Positions 9,445 to 39,785 of a stretch of 64,000 nt of DNA are shown here, piece after piece. The stretch spans positions 744,001 through 808,000 of the forward strand of contig JAMWBK010000007.1 of NCBI GenBank assembly GCA_029953675.1, in the 5' to 3' direction. The translations under genes were made by a program, and so were the position numbers. The notes under the pieces were generated by a model, which did not search any database, was not told the DNA's origin, and worked only from the letters and a program-made list of their open reading frames with translations. Positions within the stretch are counted from its first letter, which is position 1. Each line of letters begins with the position of its first letter. Source of the DNA: Rhodosorus marinus CCMP1338 (lineage: Eukaryota > Plantae > Rhodophyta).

Positions 9445-10131
9445 ATGGTTTCTAAGATTGTGATTTTGCTTGCCGCAGCCTTCGCGGTTTGCGCCATGGG
9501 ATCTGACGTTGCAATCAACGACGCTGAGAGGGTGTCGAAGAAGTGCAGCGGGAAGGCCATCTATTTGGTTCAGATCGACTATTTGTGGACCGGTGCTACC
9601 CACCCCTTCGCTTATCCGGATAATGGTTACTTCTCGCCTACAACGGTTGCGTCGCACGGAAATGGTTTCCACCTGTGGACTCCTCACGGCTACTCGACCA
9701 GGGGTGTTGAGAACGTCGCCGAGCGAGGCAGGTTGAACTTCCTTCTGGCAGAGTTGGCGGCACAGAAGGGCCGCAATGTGTTCGATTTCGTCTACACCGA
9801 GGAACGCACTGAGGACGGATCTGAGACTGTGAAGCTGCTGATCAAGCTTGACTGCACGCGCACCTACGTTTCTGGCATCTCCATGCTGACACCGAGCCCG
9901 GACTGGTTCACTGGATTCGATGATGCCAACCTGTGTATTGACGGGGAGTGGATTAAGAACTACGAGAGGAACCTGAGTGTCTGGGACGCGGGAACGGACA
10001 AGGGAGAAGACTTTGAATCCCGGAACAGGAACCAGATCCCAAGGGAGCCGATTGTGTCAATCCTTGGATCGCGGTTCAACTCGGTTCCTGTCGGAACCGT
10101 TAAGATCATCCGCAAGCGTGTCTTCCAGTAA
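9445..10131 (+). CDS. Secreted Spondin_N-domain protein, type A (A1)
   Basis: Hydrophobic signal peptide and motifs LW..ATHP..YP..GYFS, SMLTPSPDWFTG, LC, WDAGTDKG and P..PI typical of Spondin_N (PF06468). Confidence 0.9.
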   Translation: MVSKIVILLAAAFAVCAMGSDVAINDAERVSKKCSGKAIYLVQIDYLWTGATHPFAYPDNGYFSPTTVASHGNGFHLWTPHGYSTRGVENVAERGRLNFLLAELAAQKGRNVFDFVYTEERTEDGSETVKLLIKLDCTRTYVSGISMLTPSPDWFTGFDDANLCIDGEWIKNYERNLSVWDAGTDKGEDFESRNRNQIPREPIVSILGSRFNSVPVGTVKIIRKRVFQ

Positions 10132-10593: not shown

Positions 10594-11429
10594 ATGAAAT
10601 GAGAGTTTCATAACCGTCCCAATGACGATGATTTGCAAGGGCTCGCAGAGTTTGGCTTGTTACTGGGTGGGAAAAACTCAAGGGCGAGACCGCGAATGCG
10701 GAAACCCAAAGCCAAGAGTTCCAACACATTTTCCCGTTCCGTTCTAAAAACCCGAGATGGCCCACCGAGGCCAAAAGTTTGACGGACAAAACTGTCGCCT
10801 ATTCCCTACTAATTCCTAAAGAAATCCCGCAAAAAGCTACACTATTTCCAGGATTTCCTCATTTAGGGCTGGGGAATACAAAAACCCAACCCCATTTGAC
10901 GGTAAAAGTTGACCCAACCTTAGGTTTAAACACTTTTTAAAAGGAAGGTTCGATGAGCTTGGTTGGTGGGTCTGGTAAAGTTTTCTTGAATAAACTAGAC
11001 CACAGCAAGAGCTTCGTCCGTGATCATTGTAAAAGGGGCTACGGAAATCCGTTAGGAAATGGTCTGGTCAAACTGCACATCGACCACGGTCCGACGACTA
11101 GGCCATGTGGACTACGTACCCAAGACTTGTACGTAACCAAGTCTTGTTATGCTTGCTGACAGACTTGACATCCCAGTGCATGTCCCGGCAAATCTGCGGC
11201 GCACCCCCCCACGCGCCAGACAACGGCTAGCCTGAGGATTTGTGTACTGTCGACCTGAACTGCTAGGGAGGGTGAGGTATGTGAGGACGGTGATTCGAAA
11301 AATGGTTTGTGCACATGTGGGAAGAGTCAGTTTTACTTTTCAAGCGCATGCCTCCAACACGGAGCAGTCAATCAAATAACAGCCTCCCCGGGGCTCCACG
11401 ATGGAGAGATGTTAAACCTCATAGACCAG

Positions 11430-11539
11430 TTAGTTGAAGACTCTGACACGCGTGAACTTTACGGTTCCGACCCGAATTCCGTCGAATCGAGGCGCCAGGA
11501 TCGAAAGAATCCGCTCCTCGGGTTCTGGTTCTTGTTCGC
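11430..11539 (-). pseudogene. 3' stub of type B spondin gene
   Basis: Reverse complement of the last ~36 codons of B plus the B 3' flank. Joined directly to the distal half of spacer Y. Confidence 0.85.
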
Positions 11540-12625: not shown

Positions 12626-13330
12626 ATGGTTTCCAAGATTGTGATTTTGGCCGCCACAGTCCACGCGGTTTGCGCCATGGGATCTGATGTTGCCATCAAC
12701 GACGCTGAGAGGATGTCAAAGAAGTGTAACGGGTCAGCCCTGTACAAGGTGGTGTTCGAATACTTGTGGACCGGTGCGACCCACCCCGACGCGTACCCGG
12801 AGGATGGACACTTCTCCCAGACAGTTGTTGCTTCCCACGGAAATGGATACCACCTGTGGACCCCTTACGCATACTCCACAAGGGGAGTTGAAGAAATTGC
12901 CGAGAGAGGCAAGATCAACACCCTCCTGACCGAGCTGAACCAGCAGAAGGACCGCAACGTCTTCGACTTTGTGTATTCCGACGAACCCACCGAGGACGGA
13001 TCTCAAAAAGTTACCCTCCTTATCAAACTCGACTACACTCGCACCTACGCCCCTGCCATCTCCATGGCTGCACCGAGCCCGGACTGGTTCACTGGATTCG
13101 ATGACGCTAACATGTGTGTTGACGGCAAGTGGGTGAAGGAGTACGAGAGGAACTTGAGCGTGTGGGACGCCGGAATGGACAAGGGGGCTGACTTCTTATC
13201 TGCGAACAAGAACCAGAACCCGAGGGAGCCGATTGTCTCAATCCTGGCAACTCGATTCGACGGAATTCGGGTCGGAAGCGTAAAGATCACTCGTGTTGGA
13301 GTTTTCAACTATCTGGTCTATGAGGTTTAA
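12626..13330 (+). CDS. Spondin_N protein type B (B1), stop-loss C-terminal extension
   Basis: 234 aa ending RVGVFNYLVYEV (TAA to TAT). Upstream TATA position reads TGTAAAA (12506). Confidence 0.85.
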   Translation: MVSKIVILAATVHAVCAMGSDVAINDAERMSKKCNGSALYKVVFEYLWTGATHPDAYPEDGHFSQTVVASHGNGYHLWTPYAYSTRGVEEIAERGKINTLLTELNQQKDRNVFDFVYSDEPTEDGSQKVTLLIKLDYTRTYAPAISMAAPSPDWFTGFDDANMCVDGKWVKEYERNLSVWDAGMDKGADFLSANKNQNPREPIVSILATRFDGIRVGSVKITRVGVFNYLVYEV

Positions 13331-15211: not shown

Positions 15212-15898
15212 ATGGTTTCCAAGATTGTGATTTTGCTTGCCGCAGCCTTCGCGGTTTGAGCCATGGGATCTGACGTTGCGATCAACGACGCAGAGAGGGT
15301 GTCGAAGAAGTGCAGCGGGAAGGCCATCTATTTGGTTCAGATCGACTATTTGTGGACCGGTGCTACCCACCCCTTCGCCTACCCGGATGACGGATACTTC
15401 TCGCCTACAACGGTTGCGTCCCACGGAAACGGTTTCCACCTGTGGACTCCTCACGGCTACTCGACCAGGGGTGTTGAGACCGTCGCCGAGCGAGGCAGGT
15501 TGAACTTCCTTCTGGCTGAGTTGGCCGCACAGAAGGGCCGCAATGTGTTCGACTTCGTTTACACCGAGGAACGCACTGAGGACGGATCTGAGACAGTGAA
15601 GCTGCTTGTCAAGCTTGAATACACGCGAACCTACGTTTCTGGCATCTCCATGCTGACACCGAGCCCGGACTGGTTCACTGGATTCGATGATGCCAACCTG
15701 TGTGTTGACGGGGAGTGGATTAAGAACTACGAGAGGAACCTGAGTGTCTGGGACGCGGGAACGGACAAGGGAGAAGACTTTGAGTCTCCGAACAGGAACC
15801 AGTTCCCAAGGAGGCCGATTGTGTCAATCCTTGGATCTCGATTCAACTCGGTTCCTGTCGGAACCGTTAAGATCATCCGCAAGCGTGTCTTCAAGTAA
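15212..15898 (+). pseudogene. Spondin_N type A (A2) with nonsense codon in the signal peptide
   Basis: TGC to TGA at codon 16 (15257-15259). The rest of the frame is open from Met18 (15263). Confidence 0.85.
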
Positions 15899-16039: not shown

Positions 16040-16633
16040 GCACAAAGATCATTCAAAATAGAGTTGGAGAACCCGGAAGGGTTTCTCCGACACGTAAAGT
16101 TCTTAGCAGACCACCACCACTTCTCTAACCACCTGCTATCAACGCGAACTCCGAAAAGAACGATTCTCAACCCACCCAGCAGCTCAGGGCTACTGGAAGG
16201 ACTGAACAGATTGGAGCATGAAAAGAGACGGAAGATGATAGGTACAATTCCGTGGATTCTTCAAAACAACTACCTTGAAATGAGGGTGCCATTTGTTGGA
16301 ACTGCATGTTCTTTCAGAGCTACAGAGACCCGTGGAGGCACAAAGATCATTCAAAATAGAGTCGGAGAGCAGAGAAGGGTTTCTCCAACAAGTTCTTAGT
16401 ATACCACCACCACTTCTCGAACCACCCGCTATAAGGCGAACTCCGAAAAGAAGAACAGTTCTCACCCCACCCAACTGCTCGGGGCTAGCGGGGGAAGGGA
16501 CAGATTGGAGTTTGAAGAGAGACACAAAATGATAGATACAATACCGGAGATTCTTCAGAACAACTACCTTGAAATGAGGGTGCAATTTGTTGGAACTGGA
16601 TGCTCTTTCAGAGCTATAGAGACCCATGGAGGC
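16040..16633. repeat. 298-bp tandem duplication in spacer Z
   Basis: gcacaaagatcattcaaaatagagt at 16040 and 16338. The junction shares a GCACA microhomology. Confidence 0.85.
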
Positions 16634-17788
16634 ACATACACTGTTAACATTCTGTTAACAGCTAACCGGACGCAGAAAGTCTACGGGTTCGGGCCGAACA
16701 AGGGGGCTGCACAAGCGCATGGAGGAAGAAGACAAAACTGTGCTAGGCGGAATGACGGACCAAATGCATGGTGTGTACGTGCACAATCAAGAAATAAAAA
16801 AATAAGAGTTTTGTATCCGTGACAATAACGATGACTTGAAAAGACTCTCGAGTAGTTAGACTTGCTACGGGGTCGCAAAACTCCAAGGCAGGACCCCGAA
16901 TTCGGAAACCCCAAGCCAGGAGTTCCAATACAATTTCCCGTTCCACACTAAAAACCCGGGACACACTTGAAAACTCCTTCCGTAGTCGCAATTCGTTCAA
17001 TAAGGAAAAGTTGCACGAGCACACTGGAATCGCTTATTCCCGACTACTCCTCAACCAAACCTGCCAAAACGACCCTGGTTTTCCGCATTTCCTCACTTAA
17101 GGCTCCGGAATATCCAAATACGCACCCACCCGAGCTCGGCCAACTCTATGTCTAAATAATTTTAAAACGAAGACTCGATGAGCTGGGACGGGATAGGTTT
17201 AATATTGATTTAATGTGTCTACTATAAAGTTTTCTTGAATAAATTAGACCACAGAAAGCGTTCGGCGTACACCGCGGGCCCACACTGTAGTCTCATCATT
17301 TCAACGGATCCCGAGCGCTGCTGAAGAATCACACTGGTCTCGTTGCGGAGTCTTGACGTCGAAATTCGGTGCGATAGTGACCACAGTAGTTTGTTTCGAA
17401 GACTCAGTGTTCTGCGGTGACCGGAGAGAAAACGTTATGTGGTCGATCGGAAGCGGGCTGAGAGATCAAATATATTTTCGAAATGTAGAGAAGAGGTCAG
17501 GTGAAAGTACAACTTGCAACCAAACCATGAATTTGATGTGCGCTTGAAACGCAATGAGCGATTCATAAGCCGAGGGTAGAAGCGCTTCGATTTACTCTAT
17601 GTGTTAGTGTCGAGCTGAGTTGCTAGGCAGGGTGAGGTATGTGAGCGCCGAGAGTTCGTAAACTCGTTTGTGCTTATGTGGGAAGAGTTAGTTCTTTATT
17701 TTCGAGCGCGTGGCTCTCGCAGGAGGTAGTCGTCTAACTGACAGATATTTCCGGGGCTCTTTGATAGAGGGATGTGAACTCAGACCAG

Positions 17789-18475
17789 TTACTTGAACAC
17801 TCGAACACGAGTGATCTTTACGGTTCCGACCCGAATTCCATCGAAGCGAGTTGCCAGGATTGAGACAATCGGCTCCCTCGGGTTCTGGTTCTTGTTGGCA
17901 GATAAGAAGTCAGCCCCCTTGTCCGTTCCGGCGTCCCACACGCTCAAGTTCCTCTCGTACTCCCTCACCCACTTGCCGTCAACACACATGTTAGCGTCAT
18001 CGAATCCAGTGAACCAGTCCGGGCTCGGTGCAGCCATGGAGATGGCAGAGGCGTAGGTGCGAGTGTAGTCGAGCTTGATGAGTAGGGTAACTTTTTGAGA
18101 TCCGTCCTCGGTGGGTTCGTCGGAATACACAAAGTCGAAGACGTTGCGGCCCTTCTGCTGGTTCAGCTCGGACAGGAGGGTGTTGATCTTGCCTCTCTCA
18201 GCAATTTGCTCAACTCCCCTTGTGGAGTATCCGTGAGGGGTCCACAGGTGGTATCCGTTTCCGTGGGAAGCAACAACTGTCTGGGAGAAGTGTCCATCCT
18301 CCGGGTATGCGTCTGGGTGGGTAGCACCGGTCCACAAGTAGTCGAACACCACCTTGTACAGGGCTGACCCGTTACACTTCTTTGACACCCTCTCAGCGTC
18401 GTTGATGGCAACGTCAGATCCCATGGCGCAGACCGCGAGGACTGCGGCGGCCAAAATCACAATCTTGGAAACCAT
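17789..18475 (-). CDS. Spondin_N protein type B (B2)
   Basis: 228-aa ORF, signal peptide, Spondin_N motifs. Protein identical to B3. Confidence 0.9.
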   Translation of the reverse strand: MVSKIVILAAAVLAVCAMGSDVAINDAERVSKKCNGSALYKVVFDYLWTGATHPDAYPEDGHFSQTVVASHGNGYHLWTPHGYSTRGVEQIAERGKINTLLSELNQQKGRNVFDFVYSDEPTEDGSQKVTLLIKLDYTRTYASAISMAAPSPDWFTGFDDANMCVDGKWVREYERNLSVWDAGTDKGADFLSANKNQNPREPIVSILATRFDGIRVGTVKITRVRVFK

Positions 18476-21400
18476 TCTCTTGTGTATATCTGTAGCTCCT
18501 TGTCTTTTAGCTCGTTGAACTGCTCTGCTCTACTATCTTTGTTGTCGTGTTCCAAAGAAATTGTCAAGCTTGCCAGGTGTCTGTCATATTTTATACGTTC
18601 TGATCAGGGTCATACTTGCAACTCGAAGTCGATACGGTGGAGCTGCAAACTATATTGACGGCGTTAGCCCCAAGAAAATCTTGTGAGGCGATCACTTGCC
18701 TAGAGCTTTCGAAACTGAATCTAGCATCGACATGACCATCTGGTTCCCCCTACGCTAAGCGATTTGAGAATCTATCACTTGGGTCGCCAAGTGATAGATT
18801 GTCGTGCTTTATAAACCATAGTCAGGAAAAATATTCCAGAATGTGCAATCTCTGGCCCCAGAGATCTTGGAAAGTAGTATCCTACGCTACCGTGCTTCTA
18901 TATGAAAAAGTCCAGACCCGATACGAAGCCTCACAGACACCCCATCCGGTGGAGGAAATCGACACTACGGGTGAACTGAGTCAGCTGACTAAACTTGCAG
19001 TAGTCCAAAGCCAACATTCAATATGGGTAAACTCGATGAACGGCGATTAAACACATTGTTGATGAACTGCGATTGACGTTTTCTTCTATCCTATCGGCAG
19101 GAATTGCTCACAAACTATTCCTTGGGTTCCCCAGTTCACCGCGATTGAGCAGGGAAAGGAAGGAGCTAGGGCAGGATCTTTAGATTCGTTACTAATTTCC
19201 TTCCTAACTCAGCTCAGCCATCCTCAGTCCTATTGACATGGCTCTCTCGATGGCTTTCTCCAAGGAGAAATTAAGCCACTAAAAAAATGAGAAGACAAAC
19301 TGCCGCCCCCTCCATGCTTTCAAAAACAATCTAAAACATTGGTCAACGAGGGTGTCCGAGGTTCTCATATCTTTTTCAGTACAAAACAAACGTTTTGAGT
19401 GTTAATAAAAAAACTTGGGTACGGCCTTCCATTGGAAAGCAAATGCTCATTCGGGAGTTGTTGCGAGGGAATCTGAGGGGCTAAAAAAAGCTCTTCTGAC
19501 ACGACACATCGTGCTGCTCCAATCTCAAAACGGCATTTTTGCCACACAAAGGAAAACTCGATTGAGCAAACAACGAATAGAGCCGGTCGAGGCGCTCTGC
19601 GACCAAGTCCGCGGCAACCAGCGGTCCAAGAGTCGGACATACACAACAATAAACAGGACCATTCGATGGCCAAGCCAAGCTCAAATATCTGGAGTATACA
19701 ACTGCCCGCGCGTCCTTGGTTTCATTCCGAAGCCTCATGGTAGCAGCGTATAGAGCCGGTCGAGGCGCTCAGCGAACGATTCACGAAATCCAAGGAACAC
19801 AACCATAGTGGGAGTTTCTATACTGTGACGCGGCTCCCGAGCGAAAAAGTGGGACAAACGCATCAGACTGTGGTCGTAAAACCATCACCAACGTTGAAAG
19901 CTTGTTTCGCATCCTAATCAAAATATTAAAAGAAAATAGATGGTATCGTGAATTGTGGCTGACAAAAGGTTCATCACTAAACTTTAATGGAAAATATAAA
20001 CTCCATCGGGCTCCGCCCCCCCCTTTGATTTTTGTTTCGACGCACAGATATTAATGGGAGAAGTATTTTGATTCATATCTCCCCAGCCGAACTGATTGGT
20101 TATTGCAAGGGAGAGTGTATATTTTTCATATTTTTCTATTCGACTAACGTATAGAGCATTTAATTGGTTGATCCCAGACTATTTTCATTCGGGTTGAACA
20201 CGGACAAGATGATTGGTTGATGGGAAAAGTATTTTGATTCAGGATAACAAGATCGACTCTCGGTGCAACTCGAGAAAACTGAAGTTTGAGGGGTGTTGGA
20301 ATTGGGGCAACACAAAAAAACAGAGGGAAGGTTGAGAGTCAGTTGGGGAGGCGACGGAGGGGTTTTGGGATCAACTGTGTCGAAAACAGCTGGTAGAGAT
20401 TCTGTGAGTTTGAACTCGAGAGGCGAGTTGTGCAATGGATGCTAGTGAAGCGATTGAGGACAGTCATGTTCCGAATTATGTTCGAGGTCTGCCCCGTAGC
20501 TGCCTGCAAGGGCGATATGGGCATTGAGCATTCAGGTTTTCGTGCGATTTGTGTCAGGGTTTTGGATGCTTGTACTAATGAAAGTGAATCTGCTGTTTCA
20601 TAAGTGCAGTGCTCCGCGGAACTCATCGATTGCAGTATGCCCTAATCATCTGGAACGAGCTTGTTCAGCAGCTCCGTTGAAGAGTGCTTGATAAGTCCCC
20701 CCTTACCATATGCCAAGGGTACTTCCTGCGAGGGTGTTCTCCAGTTGCACTGTCATCTGTAAAGACTTTACGAGCGTACTGTCCCCACGACTCAACAAGA
20801 ATCCGTTGGTTTCCTATAAAAAAAAAGCCAGAAGGTTCTGATCAACAATCTCACAGCAAACCAAAGAGCAGGACTTGCCAAAAAAAGGTTAACAGACTGT
20901 CCTAAAAACTGTGCTGGGCAGCAAAAAACAATTTTACCATTAAAAACAATCATGAATAAAGTATAATCTTACAGCATCTTCCAGTAGAAAGAACGAATGG
21001 TTTAATAGAAAGAAGGCGGAAAGCCAGATGTCTATATAAACCGTTGGAAAAGAGGCGATGAATATGGGATTGAGGATGCTGAGTTTGCCTGAGGAAAGTA
21101 GGTCCTGCCCCAGCTGCTTCCTTTGCTTGCAATGTGCATAGTAAGCTGGCCGAATCAAGGAATAATTTCCAGGCAAGTGTTTGTGTTTTTGACAGGATAG
21201 AAGAAACGCGAATGGTCAGCTGCCAGGGTTCACTGGTAGGGTCGATTTTCTGCGATGGATGGGGTGTAAGGCTTGGTACGGGGCGGCGGATCGTTTGAGA
21301 TATGGGAAGCACAGCAACCTAGGCTATTAGTTTCCGAGACCTCTGGGGCGAGACATTGTACATTCTGTGAATATTTTTTCTGACTATGGTTTACACAGGA

Positions 21401-21710
21401 TGACGATCCAATCTATCACTTGGATCAAATTGCGGAGCGTAGGAGGAGGCAGATGTTCATGTTAGATTCAGCTTCGACAGCTCTAGGCCAGTGATCGCCT
21501 CACAAGATTTTCTTGGGGCTAACGCCGTCAATATAGTTTGCAGCTCCACCGTATCGACTTCGAGTTGCAAGTATGACCCTGCTCAGAAGGTATAAAAGAT
21601 GACAGACACCCGGCAAGCTTGACAATTTCTTTGGAACACGACAACAAGGATAGTAGAGCAGAGCAGTTCAACGAGCTAAAAGACAAGGAGCTACAGATAT
21701 ACACAAGAGA

Positions 21711-22397
21711 ATGGTTTCCAAGATTGTGATTTTGGCCGCCGCAGTCCTCGCGGTCTGCGCCATGGGATCTGACGTTGCCATCAACGACGCTGAGAGGGTG
21801 TCAAAGAAGTGTAACGGGTCAGCCCTGTACAAGGTGGTGTTCGACTACTTGTGGACCGGTGCTACCCACCCCGACGCATACCCGGAGGATGGACACTTCT
21901 CCCAGACAGTTGTTGCTTCCCACGGAAACGGATACCACCTGTGGACCCCTCACGGATACTCCACAAGGGGAGTTGAGCAAATTGCTGAGAGAGGCAAGAT
22001 CAACACCCTCCTGTCCGAGCTGAACCAGCAGAAGGGCCGCAACGTCTTCGACTTTGTGTATTCCGACGAACCCACCGAGGACGGATCTCAAAAAGTTACC
22101 CTACTCATCAAGCTCGACTACACTCGCACCTACGCCTCTGCCATCTCCATGGCTGCACCGAGCCCGGACTGGTTCACTGGATTCGATGACGCTAACATGT
22201 GTGTTGACGGCAAGTGGGTGAGGGAGTACGAGAGGAACTTGAGCGTGTGGGACGCCGGAACGGACAAGGGGGCTGACTTCTTATCTGCCAACAAGAACCA
22301 GAACCCGAGGGAGCCGATTGTCTCAATCCTGGCAACTCGCTTCGATGGAATTCGGGTCGGAACCGTAAAGATCACTCGTGTTCGAGTGTTCAAGTAA
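21711..22397 (+). CDS. Spondin_N protein type B (B3)
   Basis: 228-aa ORF. Inverted partner of B2. Confidence 0.9.
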   Translation: MVSKIVILAAAVLAVCAMGSDVAINDAERVSKKCNGSALYKVVFDYLWTGATHPDAYPEDGHFSQTVVASHGNGYHLWTPHGYSTRGVEQIAERGKINTLLSELNQQKGRNVFDFVYSDEPTEDGSQKVTLLIKLDYTRTYASAISMAAPSPDWFTGFDDANMCVDGKWVREYERNLSVWDAGTDKGADFLSANKNQNPREPIVSILATRFDGIRVGTVKITRVRVFK

Positions 22398-24362
22398 CTG
22401 GTCTGAGTTCACATCCCTCTATCAAAGAGCCCCGGAAATATCTGTCAGTTAGACGACTACCTCCTGCGAGAGCCACGCGCTCGAAAATAGAGAACTAACT
22501 CTTCCCACATAAGCACACAAACGAGTTTAAGCACTCTCGGCGCTCGCATGCCTCATCCCTCTTACCCCCAGCAGACGAGCACTATCAGGGCTCCCCATTG
22601 AATGGTATGCGATCGGTTAGGAAATTTGCTCGGTCCATAGTAGGGCGAAATCCATGCTGGAGAATACACTCTTCGCAGAAAAAGTTGCAGTGACACAGCT
22701 ACCACAAAAACCTTACACAAAAACCTTAAGCTCGGTTCTTCGATATAGACCGGGAAGAGCCAACAAAACCCGTAGAAACTAGACCGCATAATGAGGTTCA
22801 AAAGAGAGATGAACGCAAGCGGGTTGCTCTAAACTGAATGTACAGACTCAAATCACAAGAAAACTATTCCAGTTCCGCCCTTTTTTCCATCATACCCACC
22901 GTCTACCACAGTTTCAACAACCTTATTAGAGAGTGAACCAGCCCATATCCTCAATATGCTTTTATCCCACAAAACCTCAATAATAAACAAATTCATTCAG
23001 TATACCTAGAAACATACGAAAACGCTTAAGATAAGCATTGCGCCGTATTTCCCTCCAAATCCTTTTGTGGGTACTTGGAAAGCAACCGCCAATAGTTTGA
23101 CGCTTTCACCCACGTCAGTAGAAAACCCAGTTCCCTCACAATGAGCCAATTAATAAACCGAAAAAATTCTGAACGGCATTTTCAGCCAATCATAACTATT
23201 CAAAGGAAAAGTATTTTCAAATAAATTCATCTCATCTCAATATTGGTCGCCAAATAATCTAAAAAACTCCATTTCAATAATTGGTTTCGTTCTACCCCTT
23301 TCCGTCGCAAAATCAAAAACAGATGCCATGGTATTGCGACTGATCATCGCTTTTTTTGGTTTTGGTGTGGATCCCTGTACCCCTCCACCAGACGCGCACA
23401 ATCTACAAAAAAAGAAAAACTGCCAAATACAATAACTCATTTATTTTTGTCTTTTTTATTTCCAACTTTCTTGAAGCCCGCGCTTAAACTATCTCACACC
23501 AAAAAATCTTTGTTTAGAGAATATCTGGGACGCAAGTTGACATCAATATCATTATCAAGAAGAAATACATCCACTTTCTATCTAGATTATAGGCTTGGGC
23601 CTTCGTGAGATCGTTAATTTAAGATATTCGCAGGTGTCAGCCGTTTGAAGCTTGTCTACCGCGTTTACTCGGAAATCTCTCTATTCGGATTGAATGAATT
23701 TGGATTGGGGCAATCGTCTAGTACTTTTCATTATGAAAGCGACTAGTTTTCTCTCAACGAGGAGAAAACGACCATGTTCATGTTTCCCGCCCGTGGAAAC
23801 GATGGATGCAGTTGACTGAGAGCTGAGCTCTGCATGGGTCAATTTCTCAATAGAAAGCGCTTTCGTCAGTTTCACCTCGCAGATTTCGGATATCTTCATC
23901 TGCTGTCGCTGAGGTGAAGTATAGCTGAAAGGAGTCTTTCTCAGAAGTCAGGTTCATCGGGTGAAAGTCTTTGTACGTTCTGTGTATGTCATCTTTGGTG
24001 AGATGACCCATCTGAAATGAGCGGGGCAACTAAATGATGATGTATACAGCATTTTTTTGTTTCAGTCTGTTCGGAATGACGTCAAGTTTGGAGAAAGTTG
24101 GTGCGTTTTCGACCGGATGAAACCACAACCGAGGTTGACGCAAAGTTTGGGGCTAACGTCGTCCTATGAGAGCTCAAGACCGAGATCTGAACGCTACGTC
24201 GACGAGAATGGAGACGCCTCCAAAATTCGATCGAAAGAGTATAAAGGGTGACCCGAGACCCGTCAACTCGGACCGTGTCATCGAGGCAGACAACAAAGAC
24301 AACAGCAGAACAGAACAGTGCATCGAGCCAAGAGATAAGAACTAAAGAATACATACTAGAAA

Positions 24363-25049
24363 ATGGTTTCCAAGATTGTGATTTTGCTTGCCGCAGCCTT
24401 CGCGGTTTGCGCCATGGGATCTGACGTTACGATCAACGACGCAGAGAGGGTGTCGAAGAAGTGCAGCGGGAAGGCCATCTATTTGGTTCAGATCGACTAT
24501 TTGTGGACCGGTGCTACCCACCCCTTCGCCTACCCGGATGACGGATACTTCTCGCCTACAACGGTTGCGTCCCACGGAAACGGTTTCCACCTGTGGACTC
24601 CTCACGGCTACTCGACCAAGGGTGTTGAGACCGTCGCCGAGCGAGGCAGGTTGAACTTCCTTCTGGCTGAGTTGGCCGCACAGAAGGGCCGCAATGTGTT
24701 CGATTTCGTTTACACCGAGGAACGCACTGAGGACGGATCTGAGACAGTGAAGCTGCTTATCAAGCTTGACTACACGCGAACCTACGTTTCTGGCATCTCC
24801 ATGCTGACACCGAGTCCGGACTGGTTCACTGGATTCGATGATGCCAACCTGTGTGTTGACGGGGAGTGGATTAAGAACTACGAGAGGAACCTGAGTGTCT
24901 GGGACGCGGGAACGGACAAGGGAGAAGACTTTGAGTCTCCGAACAGGAACCAGTTCCCAAGGAGGCCGATTGTGTCAATCCTTGGATCTCGATTCAACTC
25001 GGTTCCTGTCGGAACCGTTAAGATCATCCGCAAGCGTGTCTTCAAGTAA
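24363..25049 (+). CDS. Spondin_N protein type A (A3)
   Basis: 228-aa ORF with the same motifs as A1. Confidence 0.9.
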   Translation: MVSKIVILLAAAFAVCAMGSDVTINDAERVSKKCSGKAIYLVQIDYLWTGATHPFAYPDDGYFSPTTVASHGNGFHLWTPHGYSTKGVETVAERGRLNFLLAELAAQKGRNVFDFVYTEERTEDGSETVKLLIKLDYTRTYVSGISMLTPSPDWFTGFDDANLCVDGEWIKNYERNLSVWDAGTDKGEDFESPNRNQFPRRPIVSILGSRFNSVPVGTVKIIRKRVFK

Positions 25050-26006: not shown

Positions 26007-26692
26007 TTACTTGAACACTCGAACACGAGTGATCTAAACGGTTCCGACCCGAATTCCGTCGAATCGAGTTGCCAGGATTGAGACAATCGGCTCCCTCGGG
26101 TTCTGGTTCTTGTTGGCAGATAAGAAGTCAGCCCCCTTGTCCGTTCCGGCGTCCCACACGCTCAAGTTCCTCTCGTACTCCCTCACCTACTTGTCGTCAA
26201 CACACATGTTAGCGTCATCGAATCCAGTGAACCAGTCCGGGCTCGGTGCAGCCATGGAGATGGCAGAGGCGTAGGTGCGAGTGTAGTCTAGCTTGATGAG
26301 TAGGGTAACCTTTTGACATCCGTCCTCGGTGGGTTCGTCGGAATACACAAAGTCGAAGACGTTGCGGCCCTTCTGCTGGTTCAGCTCGGACAGGAGGGTG
26401 TTGATCTTGACTCTCTCGGATATTGACTCTACTCCCCTTGTGGAGTATGCGTACGGGGTCCACAAGTGGTATCCGTTTCCATGGGAAGCAACAACTGTCT
26501 GGGAGAAGTGTCCATCCTCCGGGTATGCGTCTGGGTGGGTAGCACCGGTCCACAAGTATTCGAACACCACCTTGTACAGGGCTGACCCGGTACACTTCTT
26601 TGACGTCCTCTCAGCGTCGTTGATGGCAACATCAAATCCCATGGCGCAGACCGCGAGGACTGCGGCGGCCAAATCACAATCTTGGAAACCAT
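26007..26692 (-). pseudogene. Spondin_N type B pseudogene (B4)
   Basis: 1-nt deletion at codon 7-8 (MVSKIVIW...) and TGG to TAG at 26187-26189. 686 nt against 687 nt in intact copies. Confidence 0.9.
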
Positions 26693-27689: not shown

Positions 27690-28249
27690 CTATTCTACTG
27701 GCTTTATTTTACTGGTTTTATAAGCATAGCCTAAAGCGCTACGCAAACTGTGAAAAGCAACTAAGAACTAGGTAGGGAAGCGTCCAAACCCAGGTGCCGA
27801 TGGCGCGCCTCGGGCAAGCATGCTGCTCGAACATCGCCACAGAGAGACACTTAAACGCCGAAAAGTTCCAAGTATTCAACAACAGTCCATTCAACAGGAT
27901 GCTCAGTGAAACATTTCCGCAACCATTCCAAACCCGACTTCTCCACGTGACTAAAGCTTTCCACAATGAAAGGCTGGAACCGGTGGGAGCGATCCTCAGC
28001 GCGAGGCAGACTGGCCATACTCTCAGCATACCGTCGTTCCTTCACGCGGCGAAGGGCCGAAGCAGCTGCTCCCCGGCGGGGGGCGGCAGCCGTGAGATGG
28101 GCGCTTGCCACAGGGCATGTAATCGCGAGGTCAACATATGTTGAGCGTCTGGCGGCAGCATCGGAGACGAGGAGATCTGCGATACAGCGGGGCGGTGCCC
28201 TATCCGAGACCGATCTGGGTAGTTCCGATTCCAGCTCAACCGTATGCCC
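27690..28249 (-). mobile_element. 5'-truncated CRE-like non-LTR retrotransposon
   Basis: Endonuclease-region text (AYVDLAITCPVASAHL, HRFQPFIVESF, GLEWLRKCF) followed by the 3' UTR and a short-repeat tail. Confidence 0.85.
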
Positions 28250-28532
28250 CTCTTTTTTTTGGCTTTATTAGCATAGCCTAAAGCGCTACGCAAACCGTAA
28301 AAAGCAACTAAAAACTAGGTAGGGAAGCGTGCAAACCCAGGTGCCGCTGGCGCGCCTCGGCAAGCATGCTGCTCGAATATCGCCACAGAGAGACCCTTAA
28401 ACGCCGCAAAAGTTCCAAGTATTCAACAGGATGCTCAGTGAAACATTTCTGCAACCACTCCAAACCCGACTTCTCCACGTGACCAAAGCTTTCCACAATG
28501 ACAGGCTGGAACCGGTGGGAGCGACCCAGCAT
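28250..28532 (-). mobile_element. Second 5'-truncated CRE-like copy, head-to-tail with the first
   Basis: RSHRFQPVIVESFGHVEKSGLEWLQKCF...LGLHASLPSF, then the 3' UTR tttgcgtagcgctttaggctatgctaataaagcc. Confidence 0.85.
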
Positions 28533-28912
28533 AGGAATGCCCTCACAGTCCCCTCGCTAGGTCAACACGAAGCAGGAATATCTGGAATGGGCAAAGGACG
28601 CGCGTCCTTGGTTTCATTCGCAGCCTCATAGTAGCAAGGATCAGAGCCGATCGAGACCCTCAGCGAACGATTTTCGAAGTCCACAGCAGACAACCACAGT
28701 GGCAGTTTCAACTCTGAGACGGCTCCTGAACGAAAAAGTGGGACAAATGTTGATTATTTCACATCCTAATCAAAATAGTAAAAGAAAATAGATGGTTTTC
28801 TTTAACTTTGGCTGACAAAAGATTCCTCATTAAACTTTAATGGAAAATATGAACTCTCCCCTCGATCAGGGGCCCCTTGATTTTTGGTTGAAAAAGTTGT
28901 TTCGACGCGCAT

Positions 28913-28986
28913 TCAATCCTGGCAACTCGATTCGCGGAATTCGGGTCGGAACCGTAAAGATCAAGCGTGTTCGAGTTTTCAACTAA
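28913..28986 (+). pseudogene. 3' stub of type B spondin gene (B5)
   Basis: SILATRF/GIRVGTVKIKRVRVFN* followed by the B 3' flank. Fused to the middle of spacer Y. Confidence 0.85.
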
Positions 28987-30110
28987 CTGGTCTATAAGGT
29001 TTAACATCTCTCCATCTGAAAGTCCCGGGGATATTTGTTAGTTTGTGGACTACCTCCTGTGGTGAGGCACGCGCTCGAAAATTAAAAATTGAATCTTCCC
29101 TACATAAGCACAAACGAGTTTACGAACTCTCGGCGCTCGCATGCGTCATCCCTCTTACCCCCCGACAGACGAGCTACTATCGAGCTCCCCATTGAATTGT
29201 CTGCGATCGCGTTCCAATCGTTCACTCCACAATAGGGCGAAATCCATGCTCGAAAACAGACTTTCGGAAAACCAATTTCCAAGGGAAACCGTCACAAGGA
29301 AAAGGCGAAGCAACCTGAAGTTGGCTCCTTTGATTAAAGCCGGGAAAAGCCAACACATACGTAGAAACAAGACCGCATAATGAGGCTCAAAAGAGAGAAG
29401 AAAGAGCCAGCTGCTCTAAACTGAATGGACAGACTCGAAATCACAAGAAAACAATTCCAATTTCGACCATTTTCCATCAAACCCCCGCCTACCTCACCAT
29501 CAACTTTCTCATCAAAAAGTGCCACCAGCCCACGCCCTCAATTTGCTCTAATCGCTCAAAACCACGATACCGTCGAAAACGCAAGAAAAAACATGCTTGA
29601 AGTTGTATTTCCTTTCAGTAGCTTTTTTCGGTACTGTCAGGCAACCGCCAATAGCTTGACGCCTTTATCCACGTCCGTAGAAAATCCTCTTCCTTCACCA
29701 TGACATGAGCCAATTAATAAACAAAACAATTTCTGAACTTCACTTTCAACCAGTCAAAACTGTTCAAGGGAAAACTATTTTCAAATAAATTCAAAGCATC
29801 TCGATATTGGGAAACAATCTAAAAAAACTCCATTCCAAGAAATAGTTTCGTTCTACCCCCTACCTCCGCGATATTAAAAAAACAGATGCTATAGTATTGG
29901 GTGACCAGTCATAGCTTTTTTTTGGTTTTGTTGTGGTACCCCTCAAACCGCAGGTCGTAGACAATCTGCAGTAAGAGAAAAAACTCCCAAATACACCATT
30001 TGTTTGATCTGTTTATTTCTAGCTTTCTTGAAAACCTCTTTCTCCAAATCACGCCCAAAAATCTTTGTTTAGAGAATATCTGAGAAGTAAATTGACACAA
30101 GTATCATTAT

Positions 30111-32692: not shown

Positions 32693-33379
32693 ATGGTTTC
32701 TAAGATTGTGATTTTGCTTGCCGCAGCCTTCGCGGTTTGCGCCATGGGATCTGACGTTGCGATCAACGACGCAGAGAGGGTGTCGAAGAAGTGCAGCGGG
32801 AAGGCCATCTATTTGGTTCAGATCGACTATTTGTGGACCGGTGCTACCCACCCCTTCGCCTACCCGGATAACGGGTACTTCTCGCCTACAACGGTTGCGT
32901 CCCACGGAAACGGTTTCCACCTGTGGACTCCTCACGGCTACTCGACCAAGGGTGTTGAGACCGTCGCCGAGCGAGGCAGGTTGAACTTCCTTCTGGCTGA
33001 GTTGGCCGCGCAGAAGGGCCGCAATGTGTTCGACTTCGTTTACACCGAGGAACGCACTGAGGACGGATCTGAGACTGTGAAGCTGTTGATCAAGCTTGAC
33101 TACACGCGCACCTACGTTTCTGGCATCTCCATGCTGACACCGAGCCCGGACTGGTTCACTGGATTCGATGATGCCAACCTGTGTGTTGACGGGGAGTGGA
33201 TTAAGAACTACGAGAGGAACCTAAGTGTCTGGGACGCGGGAACGGACAAGGGAGAAGACTTTGAGTCACCGAACAGGAACCAGTTCCCAAGGAGGCCGAT
33301 TGTGTCAATTCTTGGATCTCGATTCAACTCGGTTCCTGTTGGAACCGTAAAGATCATCCGCAAGCGTGTCTTCAAGTAA
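32693..33379 (+). CDS. Spondin_N protein type A (A4)
   Basis: 228-aa ORF with the same motifs as A1. Confidence 0.9.
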   Translation: MVSKIVILLAAAFAVCAMGSDVAINDAERVSKKCSGKAIYLVQIDYLWTGATHPFAYPDNGYFSPTTVASHGNGFHLWTPHGYSTKGVETVAERGRLNFLLAELAAQKGRNVFDFVYTEERTEDGSETVKLLIKLDYTRTYVSGISMLTPSPDWFTGFDDANLCVDGEWIKNYERNLSVWDAGTDKGEDFESPNRNQFPRRPIVSILGSRFNSVPVGTVKIIRKRVFK

Positions 33380-34363
33380 ATCGTTTCCGAGATTTTGCAC
33401 GCATGTACTCTAGCAGTTTCGACGGAAGTCTATTGAGAACATGATTGGCTCTTGTTTGAGAAGCACAATTCAAACCACATTAAAGAACTGCCCCTTTTCC
33501 ACGGAAACACTTGGCTACTCCTGTGCAAAGATCATTCACAATAGAGTCGGAAAGCCAGGAAGAGTTCTTTCGACGCAAACTTAGTAAACCACTACCACTT
33601 CTGCAACCACCTGCTATCAACGCGAACTCCAAAAAGAACGTTTCGCAACCCACGAACAACCTCAGGACTGGACAAATTGGAGAAGGAAAAGATCTGGAAG
33701 ATGATAGATACAGTAGATTGTTCAGAACAACAACCTTGAAACCAGGGTGCAAAAGTTTTCGGAACTGGAAATGGTTTCGGAGCTATATAGACCCATGGAT
33801 GCGCATATACCGCTATCATGCTGCTGACAGCTAACCGGACAGTCCACGGGTCCGGGCCGAAGAAGGCGGCTGAACAGTCGATGAACTGGTACAGGATAGA
33901 AATATATTGTCCTATTGGTCTAGTAACTTTTTTTTGAATCAGGTAGACGCAGAAAGTGTTTTCTTCTCGATCATCGCAAACGATTGAGAGATTAAATATT
34001 GCTTTTCGAAATGTAGAGAAGAGATCGGATGGGCTGAGAGATGAAATACTACTCCTTCAACTGTAGAGAAGAGATCAGGTGAGAACAAGCTTTCAGCTGA
34101 ACCATGAAGTTGATATGCACTTGAAGCGTATGAGCAAATCACGAACCGAGGGTTGAACTGCTTCGATCCCCTTTTGTGTTAGTGTCGACCTGAGCTGCTA
34201 GGAAGGGTGAGGTATCTGAGGGACGGTCGAAAACTGGTTTCTGCTTAGGTGGGAAGATTCAGTTTTACTTAAAGTGCATGCCTCCAAATACAACAGGGGG
34301 CAGTCGAATAACTAACAGATATCCCCCGGCTCTCAGATGGAGAGATGTGAACGCATAGGCCAG

Positions 34364-35050
34364 TTAGTTGAAGACTCGAACACGCGTGATCTTCACGGTT
34401 CCGACCCTAATTCCGTCGAATCGAGTTGCCAGGATTGAAACAATCGGCTTCCTCGGGTTCTGGTTCTTGTTCGCAGATAAGAAGTCAGCCCCCTTGTCCG
34501 TTCCGGCGTCCCACACGCTCAGGTTCCTCTCGTACTCCCGCACCCACTTGCCATCAACACACATATTAGCGTCATCGAATCCAGTGAACCAGTCCGGGCT
34601 CGGTGCAGCCATGGAGATGGCAGACGCGTAGGTGCGAGTGTAGTCGAGTTTGATAAGCAGGGTAACCTTTTGAGATCCGTCCTCGGTGGGTTCTTCGGAA
34701 TACACAAAGTCGAAGACGTTGCGGCCCTTCTGCTGGTTCAGCTCGGACAGGAGGGTGTTGATCTTGCCTCTCTCGGCAATTTGCTCAACTCCCCTTGTCG
34801 AGTAGCCGTGAGGGGTCCACAGGTGGTATCCATTTCCGTGGGAAGCAACAACTGTCTGGGAGAAGTGTCCATCCTCCGGGTATGCGTCTGGGTGGGTCGC
34901 ACCGGTCCACAAGTAGTCGAACACCACCTTGTACAGGGCTGACCCGTTACACTTCTTTGACATCCTCTCAGCGTCGTTGATGGCAACATCAGATCCCATG
35001 GCGCAGACCGCGAGGATCGCGGCGGCGAAAATCACAATCTTGGAAACCAT
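34364..35050 (-). CDS. Spondin_N protein type B (B6)
   Basis: 228-aa ORF. Inverted partner of B7. Confidence 0.9.
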   Translation of the reverse strand: MVSKIVIFAAAILAVCAMGSDVAINDAERMSKKCNGSALYKVVFDYLWTGATHPDAYPEDGHFSQTVVASHGNGYHLWTPHGYSTRGVEQIAERGKINTLLSELNQQKGRNVFDFVYSEEPTEDGSQKVTLLIKLDYTRTYASAISMAAPSPDWFTGFDDANMCVDGKWVREYERNLSVWDAGTDKGADFLSANKNQNPRKPIVSILATRFDGIRVGTVKITRVRVFN

Positions 35051-37310
35051 TCTCTTGTATATGTCTGTAACTCCTTGTTTATTAGCTCGTTGTACTGCTC
35101 TGCTCTGCTCTGCTCTGTTTGTTGTCTTGCTCCAAAGAAAATATCAAACTTGCCGGGAGTCAGTCAGGGGCTTTTATAACCTGTGATCGGAGTGGTACTT
35201 CCGAATCGACGTTGAGACAATCGGGCTGCAGACTGTGTTGACGGCGGTGGCCGGCGAATATCTGGTGAGTCGAGCATTGACCTCGATCTGTCGAAACTGA
35301 ATATAGCAACAACATGAACATCGGCCTCCTACGCTTCGCGCTTTGACCAAGTGATAGAATGGATCATCATCCTGTTTAACCACAGTCAGGAAAATTATTC
35401 AAAGCAGGTTACGCTGTCTAGCCCCAGAGGTCTCGGAATAGTAGCCTAGGCGGCTATGTTTCTTTCTATCTCAAAAGATCTGCCGACGTTGCCAAGTCTT
35501 ACACTCAACCCGTGAGACAAAAACGACGAACCACCAGTGAACTTAGGCAGCTGACTAAACTTGCGGAGTCCCAAGCCAACGTTCAATATGGCTCAACTCG
35601 ATGTACGGCGATTAAACACATTCGTTCATGCACTGCGATTGACGTTTTCTTCTATCCTATCGACGGGAATTGCCCACAAACTATTCCCTGAGTTACCCAG
35701 TTTACCGAGCTTGAGCAGGGAAAGGAAGGAAAATAAGCCAGGCTCTTTAGGTCATTATCTACTTTCATAAGCCAGTACGGTCGTCCTCAATCCCAATGAC
35801 ATCGCCTCTTTCTGATTTCTTTCTCCAACGAGAAATTAGGTCACTCAAAAAATCAGAAAACAAACTCGCTTGCTTGCGTACGGCCTTCTATTGGAGTATG
35901 GGAAATGCTGGTTCAGGAGTTGCTGAAGGAGAATCTGGGGGGGAAAAAAGGAGCGCTTACTGACCGCGCACATCCTGTCCCTCCAATGTGAAACAGCCAA
36001 TTTACAGCACAAACGTAAACTCGCTGAGCAAAATTCGAATAGAGCCTGTCGAGGCGGTCAGGGAACGATTCTCGAAGTCTACAACAACAAACAGTCCAAG
36101 ACTCGGAAACACACGACAACAAACAGGGCTATTCGAAAACCAAAGGTGAAGTTCAAATGCCTGGAAGGGACAACGACCTGCACGTCCTTGGTCTCATTAC
36201 GAAGCCCTATAGTAAAACCAAACAGCCATAGCGATAGTTTGAACGTCGGGGACGGCTGTTGGGAGAACGAAGACCAGAGTGGGACAAATCTTGGGACTTG
36301 TTTCACATCCCAATCAAACTTTTAAAAGAAAAAATGATGATTTACCTCAAGTTTGGTTTGCAAAAGCACCCTTCATTAAATTGTAATGGAAAATATAAAC
36401 TCTACTGGAGCCCTTCTGATTTTTTGTTGAAAATACTTTTTCGCAAGAGATATTAATGGGAGAAGTATTTTGATTCATATCTCTACAGCCCACATGATTG
36501 GTTATTACGATGACTGATTTTTATCTCACTATTCAAGTAATTGATACGGCATTTTATTGGTTAACATAAGACCATTTTGATTTGGGTTGAATACGGACAA
36601 GATGGTTGGTTGATGGGAAAACTATTTTGATTCAAGACAACAAGATCGACTCTCGGTCTAAAATCGAGAAAACTGAAGTTTGAGGGGTTGTTGGAATTGG
36701 GGCGGGAGGAGAAATGGAGGGGGTTTGGGATCAAACTGTGTCGAAAGTAGCTAGTGGAGATTGTGTGAGTTTGCACTCGAGAGGGCCAATTTTTTGTGCA
36801 ATGGGGGCCACTGGAGCGATTGAGGACAGGCATAGTTCAGATGAGCTGCGCTAAGTATACTCCTAGTACGCTCACGTGCTTTGCAGGGCGATCTGGACGT
36901 TGAGCTTTCAATTTTTTCTGTGTTGTGTACAGGTTCTTGTATTGGACGCTGGTACGAACGAAAGTGATCCGCTGTTTCATAATTGCAGTGTTCGCCCCAA
37001 TTCACAGAATGTTGTACGAGCTGATCATCTGGAGCGAGCGTGTTCAGGAGGACTGTTGAAGAGTCCTTACTAGATTCTCCCCTGCCATATGCCAAGCGCA
37101 CTTCCCTCGAGCCGGTGTTCTCTTAATTTCGCTCTCATCAGTAATTGCTTTACGAGCGTGCGGTCCCCGCTAGCTCGACGAGAACTGCCATACTCGGCTA
37201 GATCTTCCGGTTGTCGAAGTCTCCCAGCCGAAATTCGGAAGCGAACCCAATGTCGAGATGCTCTCGACGATCACAGTACTTTCATCCAGTGCCTCCCTAG
37301 TAAAAGCACC

Positions 37311-38053: not shown

Positions 38054-38653
38054 CCCCCCCGTTAGTAAACCACCACCACCACCACTGAAGAAGAAGGTAT
38101 ATATTCAGAGACTAAAACAAGGGTTCCAAGGGGTCTACTGTAAGTTTGATCAAATGGTTCAGTTCACTGGTAGCGCCATTTTTCTCTCACGGGTTGAGTG
38201 TAAGGCTGGCAACGTCGGTAGATCTGTTGAGATAGAAAGAAGCATAGCAGCCTAGGCTACTATTGTCCGAGACCTCTGGGCGTAGACAGCTGTAACCTTC
38301 TTTGAATATTTTTCCTGACTATGGTTTAAACGGGATGATGATCCATTCTATCACTTGGTCAAAAGCGCGAAGCGTAGGAGGCCGATGCTCATGTCGTTGC
38401 TATATTCAGTTTCGACAGATCGAGGTCAATGCTCGATTCACCAGATATTCGCCGGGCTAGCGCCGTCAACATAGTTTGCAGCCCGATTGTCTCAACGTCG
38501 ATTCGGAAGTACCACTCCGATCACAGGTTATAAAAGGTGGCTGACTCCCGGCAACTTTGATATTTTCTTTGGAGCAAGACAACAAACAGAGCAGAGCAGA
38601 GCAGAGCAGTACAACGAGCTAATAAACAAGGAGTTACAGACATATACAAGAGA

Positions 38654-39340
38654 ATGGTTTCCAAGATTGTGATTTTCGCCGCCGCGATCCTCGCGGTCTG
38701 CGCCATGGGATCTGATGTTGCCATCAACGACGCTGAGAGGATGTCAAAGAAGTGTAACGGGTCAGCCCTGTACAAGGTGGTGTTCGACTACTTGTGGACC
38801 GGTGCGACCCACCCAGACGCATACCCGGAGGATGGACACTTCTCCCAGACAGTTGTTGCTTCCCACGGAAATGGATACCACCTGTGGACCCCTCACGGCT
38901 ACTCGACAAGGGGAGTTGAGCAAATTGCCGAGAGAGGCAAGATCAACACCCTCCTGTCCGAGCTGAACCAGCAGAAGGGCCGCAACGTCTTCGACTTTGT
39001 GTATTCCGAAGAACCCACCGAGGACGGATCTCAAAAGGTTACCCTGCTTATCAAACTCGACTACACTCGCACCTACGCGTCTGCCATCTCCATGGCTGCA
39101 CCGAGCCCGGACTGGTTCACTGGATTTGATGACGCTAATATGTGTGTTGACGGCAAGTGGGTGAGGGAGTACAAGAGGAACCTGAGCGTGTGGGACGCCG
39201 GAACGGACAAGGGGGCTGACTTCTTATCTGCGAACAAGAACCAGAACCCGAGGAAGTCGATTGTTTCAATCCTGGCAACTCGATTCGACGGAATTAGGGT
39301 CGGAACCGTGAAGATCACTCGTGTTCGAGTCTTCAACTAA
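38654..39340 (+). CDS. Spondin_N protein type B (B7)
   Basis: 228-aa ORF. Differs from B6 at 2 residues. Confidence 0.9.
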   Translation: MVSKIVIFAAAILAVCAMGSDVAINDAERMSKKCNGSALYKVVFDYLWTGATHPDAYPEDGHFSQTVVASHGNGYHLWTPHGYSTRGVEQIAERGKINTLLSELNQQKGRNVFDFVYSEEPTEDGSQKVTLLIKLDYTRTYASAISMAAPSPDWFTGFDDANMCVDGKWVREYKRNLSVWDAGTDKGADFLSANKNQNPRKSIVSILATRFDGIRVGTVKITRVRVFN

Positions 39341-39785
39341 CTGGCCTATGCGTTCACATCTCTCCATCTGAGAGCCGGGTGGATATCTGTTAGTTATTCG
39401 ACTGCCCCCTGTTGGATTTGGAGGCATGCACTTAAAAAGTAAAACTGAATCTTCCCACCCAAGCAGAAACCAGTTTACGAACCCTTGGCGCTCACATGCC
39501 TCATTCCTCTTAAACCCCAACAGACGAGCACCATCAGCGCCCCCCATTGAATTGTACGCGATCGGGTTCCAATTGTTCATTCCACAGTAGGGCGACATCC
39601 ATGCTTGAAAACAGACTTTCGCACAAAAATTTCCATTGGAAGCCATCACAAAAGAAGAGAAGCAACCTCAAGCTCGCTTCTTGGATAAGAAAAGTAGAAC
39701 ACGTAGAAACTAGACCCTATAACGAGGCTCAAAAGAGAGGAGAACGAAAGCCAGTTCCTCTAAACTGAATGTACACACTTCAAAA

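Follow-up and report, generated by a model that had tools for sequence, protein, structure and literature searches.

An array of genes for Spondin_N-domain proteins was analysed in 64,000 nucleotides of the red alga Rhodosorus marinus CCMP1338 (assembly GCA_029953675.1, contig JAMWBK010000007.1, positions 744,001 to 808,000 of the forward strand); this whole stretch is called the window, and all positions are counted from its first letter. We found that head-to-head genes on the arms of palindromes in this array have been kept alike, very probably by repeated short-tract, apparently non-crossover gene conversion between the arms of an old and decaying palindrome, as judged from the copies and their flanks. 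The array consists of intronless open reading frames (ORFs) of 687 nt between 9.4 and 53.5 kb of the window, which encode proteins of 228 amino acids with a Spondin_N domain and a hydrophobic N-terminus that reads, by eye, as a putative signal peptide. The members fall into two types, A and B, with ~76% protein identity and a synonymous divergence (dS) of ~0.7 between them. Both types scored far above the gathering cut-off of 24 for the Pfam family PF06468 (Spondin_N), at 147 bits (E=8e-43) for B3 and 134 bits for A3, and the nearest PDB relatives are Spondin-1 (3q13, E=8e-24) and Spondin-2 (3d34). They are arranged in a unit A(+) – B(−) – spacer – B(+) of ~9 kb that is repeated five times in tandem (U1–U5) to form one array of 45 kb. 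The ATGs of the head-to-head B genes are 3.2–3.6 kb apart in three of the units (U2, U4, and U5), and an arm has been lost from each of the other two, where B1 (U1) and B4 (U3) stand without a partner.

The coding sequences (CDS) of B2 (17789–18475, minus strand) and B3 (21711–22397, plus strand) in U2 differ at one of 687 nt, a synonymous change at CDS position 162 (18314/21872 of the window), and the two proteins are identical. In U4, B6 (34364–35050, minus) and B7 (38654–39340, plus) have six CDS differences that are confined to its 3′ third, and two of them change a residue (E174K and P202S). In U5, 35 nucleotide differences and 13 residue differences separate B8 (45508–46194, minus) from B9 (49495–50181, plus), and the two have the terminus KVTRVRVFN in common. 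All these residue counts, the single synonymous change and the common terminus had been reported in a first-pass annotation of the window and were confirmed. The CDS differences between units are 22–38 as against 1 for B2/B3 and 6 for B6/B7, which bears out the earlier claim that each of these pairs resembles itself more than copies of the same orientation elsewhere. Similarly, the dS was 0.006 for B2/B3 and 0.026 for B6/B7 as compared with 0.09–0.18 between units, that is, 6–25 times lower within the pairs. Over the U2 core interval, B2 and B3 are 98.9% identical and either of them is 88.6–92.1% identical to any other copy, and B6/B7 show 98.1% identity over the same columns and 98.9% over their own core. 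Partners thus resemble one another more than they do copies that separated after the inverted duplication arose, B8/B9 only weakly so.

The self-complementary parts of the three units were mapped as inverted repeats of 1065 nt in U2 (17669–18733/21453–22517, 99% complementary), 842 nt in U4 (34325–35166/38538–39379, 99%), and 1044 nt in U5 (45309–46352/49337–50380, 91%). A permissive BLAST search extended the detectable arms to 1.4 kb in U2 and U4 and 1.9 kb in U5, with a left arm at 17602–18989 (B2) and a right arm at 21215–22587 (B3) in U2 (92% over 1404 columns), 34199–35572 (B6) and 38131–39512 (B7) in U4 (94.7%), and 45108–46957 (B8) and 48679–50608 (B9) in U5 (80%). In each case, the inverted arms flank a unique spacer of 2.2–2.6 kb (U2 and U4) or 1.7 kb (U5). 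The U2 spacer (18990–21214) is non-palindromic except for a weak residual inverted homology (64%), and it is colinear with the spacers of U4 and U5. The B genes had been described as forming multi-kb palindromes, and this is true of the whole arm-spacer-arm structure of ~5 kb; the homogenised part, at 99% identity or more, is only 0.57–1.07 kb long (571–1065 nt).

The identity between the arms was found to fall stepwise in U2, from 99.8% through ~95% to ~80%. The two arms differ at only 2 positions over 869 nt (17669–18537), one of them in the 120 nt after the stop codon and none in the 62 nt before the ATG. This core is followed by a shoulder (18538–18735) of ~95% identity with eight single-nucleotide differences and one 6-bp indel, reaching out to about −260, and the inner (18736–18989) and outer (17602–17668) parts of the arm have diverged by ~17–20% with several indels. 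The near-identity of B2/B3 had been estimated at ~220 bp upstream and ~130 bp downstream, in agreement with the core and shoulder on the 5′ side and the 120 nt on the 3′ side. In U4, a tract of 571 nt (34578–35148 and 38556–39126), comprising 98 nt of 5′ flank and CDS positions 1–473, is identical on the two arms, and beside it the divergence is 1–2% towards the 3′ end and 4–7% in the inner arm, with a steep rise at 35550. An identical tract is absent from U5, where 2–9 mismatches per 100 nt were counted in the CDS and 10–35 in the flanks, and the B9 arm keeps a longer outer part (to ~+430) than the B(+) copies of other units. Outside the arms, a weak but significant inverted homology of 64–74%, well over that of shuffled controls, was still detected; the ancestral arms were therefore longer than the present ones, and decay has shortened them from the distal side.

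The likeness of the partners extends into non-coding DNA. In the region from −260 to −1, B2/B3 are 96.4% and B6/B7 96.5% identical, and the U2 and U4 copies match their non-partners at 78–89%. From +688 to +806, the corresponding values are 99.1% for B2/B3 and 95.5% for B6/B7 as compared with 72–87% for most other pairs, the B4(−) copy of U3 being 96–97% identical to B2/B3, and in the same flank the unconverted partners B8(−) and B9(+) are 71% identical, no pair of the array being more diverged there. Derived states that are common to both partners and absent from all other copies numbered 19 in U2, 12 in U4, and 7 in U5. Among the private states ascribed earlier to B6/B7, the motif SEEP is indeed confined to the pair and IFAAAI occurs also in B9; the 3′ flank said to be their own is pair-specific in part and partly common to B8(−) (86–87%).

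These patterns were further assessed by neighbour-joining trees in windows along the copies, with split frequencies from 1000 bootstraps calculated by our own neighbour-joining code, and by a run test, a simplified Sawyer-type permutation of the order of polymorphic sites over 28 pairs. The B2/B3 split received 100% support in the proximal 5′ flank and 85–100% in the thirds of the CDS, and for the B6/B7 split the support was 99%, 97%, and 98% in the proximal 5′ flank, the middle third of the CDS, and the 3′ flank, respectively; overall, the support was mostly 85–100% for B2/B3 and 92–100% for B6/B7 except in two windows. The clustering of partners from the proximal 5′ flank through the CDS into the 3′ flank is what had been predicted if the arms are converted. 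In the permutation, B2/B3 (p=0.0002) and B6/B7 (p=0.0004) remained significant when the 28 pairs were corrected for, and in both pairs the concordant sites are clustered and bounded by diverged sequence. Grouping by orientation in the distal arms had also been predicted and was found; between −560 and −1050, the four minus copies match mutually with local scores of 137–229 and 73–80% identity as compared with scores of 23, 55, and 94 for the partners. The trees, the run test, the dS values, and the homogenised non-coding flanks together support the earlier suggestion of arm-to-arm conversion.

The palindrome is older than the amplification of the unit. Colinear homology at 65–74% identity links the U2, U4, and U5 spacers, and both arms or their remnants were found in all five units. 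In U1, B1 (12626–13330, plus) has lost its stop codon, which adds six amino acids, and the B(−) remnant (11239–11539, minus) retains the last ~27 codons and the 3′ flank. In U3, the T-run that follows codon 8 is 1 nt shorter in the B4 pseudogene (26007–26692, minus), whose frame is also interrupted by two TAG stops (26189 and 26036), and the B(+) remnant, presumably the B5 of the first-pass annotation (28912–29157, plus), consists of the 3′ end and its flank. The colinear spacers, the arm remnants, the distal grouping of the minus copies, the residual inverted homology, and the 71% identity of the B8(−)/B9(+) 3′ flank together point to a palindrome that predates the units, and because of this age, simple duplication of units would be expected to group B(−) with B(−) and B(+) with B(+).

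The sequence shows directly that the copies are mosaics, where the tracts end, and, for some copying events, which way they ran. In the 3′ flank, the plus-type states occur in B1(+) and B9(+), and B3(+) is of the B2(−)/B4(−) type and B7(+) of the B6(−)/B8(−) type; with this minus-type flank on plus copies, the sequence has been copied from minus to plus. Between +825 and +848, B2(−) carries the type of B1(+), B3(+), and B7(+), with a B1/B2 run there at p=0.004, and this plus-type segment in a minus copy indicates copying in the opposite direction as well. The first ~60 nt of the CDS in the U4 pair are common to B9(+) (98% for the split B6, B7, B9), and positions 231–460 are common to B8(−) (92% for the split B6, B7, B8), as would be expected of different tracts from different donors. 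Furthermore, at half of the six sites that still distinguish B6 from B7 (CDS 474, 498, and 520), the B7(+) state is that of B9(+), and at CDS 474 and 520 the B6(−) state is that of B8(−); these differences may be read as relics of orientation-specific ancestry.

The sequence of events that we propose would begin with an old inverted duplication that gave B(−) – spacer – B(+) beside an A(+) paralogue, and that unit would then have been amplified in tandem to five copies. The distal parts of the arms would since have decayed to 64–80% identity, and the gene with its proximal flanks would have been overwritten by repeated non-reciprocal copying between the arms of the same palindrome, that is, by intrachromosomal ectopic gene conversion, in tracts of ~0.6–1.1 kb and in both directions. 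The latest of these events would be those seen in U2 (869 nt with two differences) and U4 (571 nt identical), U5 having been converted longer ago. A weaker action of the same kind between other nearby copies of one type (A2/A3, A4/A5, B4 with B2/B3, and U4 with U5) would let the whole array evolve in concert, with the head-to-head partners 3 kb apart exchanging most often. The likely route would be the repair of a double-strand break or stalled fork on the partner arm, resolved without crossover, and the common orientation of the U2, U4, and U5 spacers suggests such non-crossover outcomes. Purifying selection on the CDS may maintain the homology and thereby confine the tracts to the gene.

Several observations weigh against this explanation or narrow it. 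The evidence comes from one assembly of one strain, and its polishing might have removed a small number of real differences from arms that were already near-identical. The CDS similarity of B8/B9 is no higher than that of many non-partner pairs. In the inner arm (−560 to −300), B2(−) clusters with B1(+)/B4(−) and not with B3(+), which makes exchanges between non-partners part of the history. In addition, no GC bias was detected in the pair-private fixed states of U2 and U4 together (10 changes from A/T to G/C as against 17 from G/C to A/T), the singleton states having 34 and 41 such changes, respectively.

The nuclear assembly was built with NextDenovo from Oxford Nanopore Technologies (ONT) reads of a 6-kb size selection and then went through three rounds of polishing in Pilon, for which Illumina reads of 100 bp were aligned with bowtie2 (PMC10250338). 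Short reads map to multiple places in near-identical paralogues, and arms truly as diverged as those of B8/B9 might in this way have been made alike by the consensus or by the polishing. We consider such an artefact highly unlikely because 100-bp reads with ~5% mismatches map to their own copy, and only copies that are ~99% identical would be blurred. Nor would it account for the 19 and 12 private derived states, for non-coding flanks that are pair-specific and 20–28% off the other copies, for tracts that end in graded shoulders beside diverged arm sequence, or for asymmetric spacers of 2.2–2.6 kb in the middle of a 2.2-Mb contig, and homopolymer indels are absent from the identical tracts. 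The real identity of the cores may nevertheless be slightly below the assembled value. A fold-back artefact of ONT reads was also considered and was rejected in view of the asymmetric spacers, the graded decay of the arms, and the mid-contig position. Independent recent inverted duplications of a B segment of ~1 kb in U2 and U4 would leave a stretch of high identity over ~1 kb, as is seen in a young duplicate, and we regard them as improbable to the same degree as the assembly artefact. The identical cores are embedded in older arms that have diverged by 5–20%, and their positions correspond from unit to unit; the spacers between them are likewise homologous and colinear, and remnants of both arms persist in all five; moreover, the replacement in place of a pre-existing homologous segment is gene conversion by definition.

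Two further explanations leave the history of the arms aside and look to the gene itself. That the tracts are templated by transcripts through complementary DNA (cDNA) is even less likely in our judgement than an assembly artefact, though it has some points in its favour; the tracts correspond roughly to the presumed transcription unit (about −100/−300 to ~+110 past the stop), in U2, U4, and A2/A3 they stop close to the ends of the gene, and a reverse transcriptase (RVT_1) fragment is located within the array (44510–44932). The shoulders, however, reach 260–500 nt upstream into likely promoter sequence, the reverse transcriptase is a degraded fragment, and DNA-to-DNA conversion limited by homology gives the same boundaries more simply. 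The least probable of the alternatives is that purifying selection alone, on protein, codons, and promoter, keeps the partners alike without exchange. In its favour are the ratio of nonsynonymous to synonymous divergence (dN/dS) of 0.06–0.3, a G+C content of ~70% at third codon positions (GC3) as compared with 44% in the spacers, and the CDS being the best-conserved part in every comparison. Selection bears, however, on all intact copies to the same extent and cannot produce a partner-specific likeness, and it explains neither the 6–25 times lower synonymous divergence within pairs nor the private derived states of the partners, their homogenised non-coding flanks, and the minus-type 3′ flank on B3(+) and B7(+).

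Gene conversion between the copies appears to reach beyond the palindromes. A2 (15212–15898, plus) and A3 (24363–25049, plus), which are direct repeats, are 97–100% identical from −319 to +780 with a dS of 0.013 and 62–92% identical farther out, and A4 (32693–33379, plus) and A5 (41545–42231, plus) have nine nucleotide differences, which suggests that conversion acts also between direct repeats 9 kb apart. Furthermore, B4(−) was found to have a 56-site run in common with B2/B3 from CDS position 660 to +789. With A2/A3 and B4 with B2/B3 homogenised, the process is not exclusive to palindromes; it is better described as an apparent array-wide ectopic conversion that is most frequent between the nearest copies of the same type, which for the B genes are the head-to-head partners ~3 kb apart.

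Similar pairs have been described in animals. The Drosophila genes Hsp70Aa/Ab, Hsp70Ba/Bb, and Amy-p/Amy-d form palindromic pairs with ectopic gene conversion, as reviewed in PMC3924832 (citing Bettencourt & Feder 2002). As in those pairs, the Rhodosorus genes are closely linked mirror-image paralogues that are more alike than the age of the pair predicts, and non-crossover resolution is favoured; in Amy, homogenisation is mostly confined to the coding sequence and the flanks have diverged (PMC3924832). Unlike the Drosophila pairs, the Rhodosorus pair lies within a five-fold tandem unit, the outgroup is provided by paralogous units and not by other species, and the genes encode putatively secreted Spondin_N proteins of a unicellular red alga, read from one genome. 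In Caenorhabditis elegans, the identity of the inverted hsp16-1/hsp16-48 modules is ascribed to gene conversion in PMC3966223 (citing Russnak & Candido 1985). These too are head-to-head genes in a kb-scale inverted repeat, and in them and other adjacent inverted paralogues the tracts are short and in many cases do not leave the ORF (PMC3966223). The hsp16 modules are, however, 100% identical over 1.9 kb around a 416-bp spacer, unlike the Rhodosorus arms with spacers of 2.2–2.6 kb (1.7 kb in U5), and the three Rhodosorus palindromes are at different stages of homogenisation.

The first-pass annotation had likened the pairs to the palindromes of mammalian Y chromosomes. The likeness holds for arm-to-arm conversion, which is described for mammalian sex-chromosome palindromes (Rozen et al. 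2003 via PMC3924832; PMC8600007; PMC8327919; PMC3403216), and for the inverted arms around a unique spacer, the non-reciprocal exchange, the protein-coding genes, and a possible safeguard against decay. It fails for the extent of homogenisation, since the Rhodosorus tracts are short and centred on the gene and Y arms are near-identical over their whole length. Sex-chromosome palindromes are defined by arms of at least ~8–10 kb with >99% identity throughout (10.1101/800185, PMC8327919), and they have arms that can reach megabase size, lie on sex chromosomes, and carry testis-expressed genes. The Rhodosorus arms measure 1.4–1.9 kb with whole-arm identities of 92%, 94.7%, and 80%, and their distal parts, unlike those of the sex-chromosome palindromes, have decayed to 64–80%. 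The closest analogues are the Drosophila Hsp70/Amy and C. elegans hsp16 pairs rather than the Y palindromes, and the mechanism, ectopic gene conversion between linked inverted paralogues, is already known and not new. No report of such conversion in red-algal nuclear genomes was found, the literature search not having been aimed at it. The array offers an internally controlled example, its five units comprising two palindromes with recent conversion, a third in which conversion is old, and two from which an arm has been lost; one sequence is therefore enough to show how long the tracts are, which way they were copied, and how the arms decay in the background. It is also a warning that family trees will mislead on the order of duplications, and that short-read polishing and mapping need care in such arrays.

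All six partnered B copies are intact and both partnerless ones are altered, B4 being a pseudogene and B1 lacking its original stop codon. Such a contrast agrees with a maintenance role of conversion, with numbers too small to show it, and the idea that arm-to-arm conversion serves as a maintenance device for a dosage-amplified family of secreted proteins is a tentative one that we think rather unlikely. If true, it would parallel, on an ordinary algal chromosome, the 'self-repair' proposed for Y-chromosome palindromes, and the five units at different stages would provide a natural time series of the birth, conversion, and decay of a palindrome. To our knowledge, no sexual cycle has been reported for R. 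marinus, which is a unicellular red alga.

The occurrence of the array outside this assembly was also searched for. Exact look-ups of ten array ORFs (A1, A3–A5, B1, B3, and B6–B9) in a collection of 15 billion proteins found none of them, and the flanking antiporter of the same contig is present in that collection; the public annotation of the assembly therefore seems to lack the whole spondin array. A second Rhodosorus genomic locus for comparison was not found by exact look-ups, among the contigs of homologues, or in a metagenome scan, and that scan found no relatives of B. The contigs of the best homologue (P0001) are transcript-like, at most 1.6 kb long, and without genomic context. Among transcripts labelled R. 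marinus from other strains, there is an A orthologue (P0001, 91% protein identity) and an intact transcribed orthologue (P0002, 86%) of the C-type copy described below, and no B orthologue was found in them; either the strains are quite diverged or B is lineage-specific or silent there. The best homologue of the flanking antiporter was tried as a guide to an orthologous locus and rejected; it turned out to be a paralogue from elsewhere in this genome, on a different contig, and its 10-kb flanks are without spondin genes.

The remaining members of the array are A1 (9445–10131, plus) and a divergent Spondin_N copy of C type (52823–53503, plus), the last member of the array, with in-frame stops at 53351 (TGA) and 53441 (TAA). 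A2 has TGA at codon 16 (15257–15259) where A3 reads TGC and is otherwise 7 nt from A3, which points either to a pseudogene of very recent origin or to an error in the base. Downstream of A2, there is also a local tandem duplication of ~300 bp (16040–16342 and 16338–16636, 84% identity). The last ~30 codons and the 3′ flank of the B4 pseudogene are still 96–97% identical to B2/B3. A degraded retroelement occupies 43074–45012 between A5 and B8, its RVT_1 fragment (44510–44932) being on the minus strand, and a related repeat of 0.5–0.8 kb is located in U3 (27697–28527) at the site of the missing right half-spacer and most of B5(+); the loss of this arm was probably due to the activity of transposable elements. 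Scans of the window for tRNA and Rfam families gave no match, and the conserved flanks and spacers are therefore not explained by an RNA gene. The array is bordered by single-copy genes for a class-3 lipase with a weak EF-hand match (2493–4424), an LdpA-like Fe-S protein (54228–55367), a thiamin pyrophosphokinase (58783–59523), and the NhaC-type Na+/H+ antiporter (61152–63461), whose paralogues form a 68%-identical tandem pair on contig JAMWBK010000001.1.

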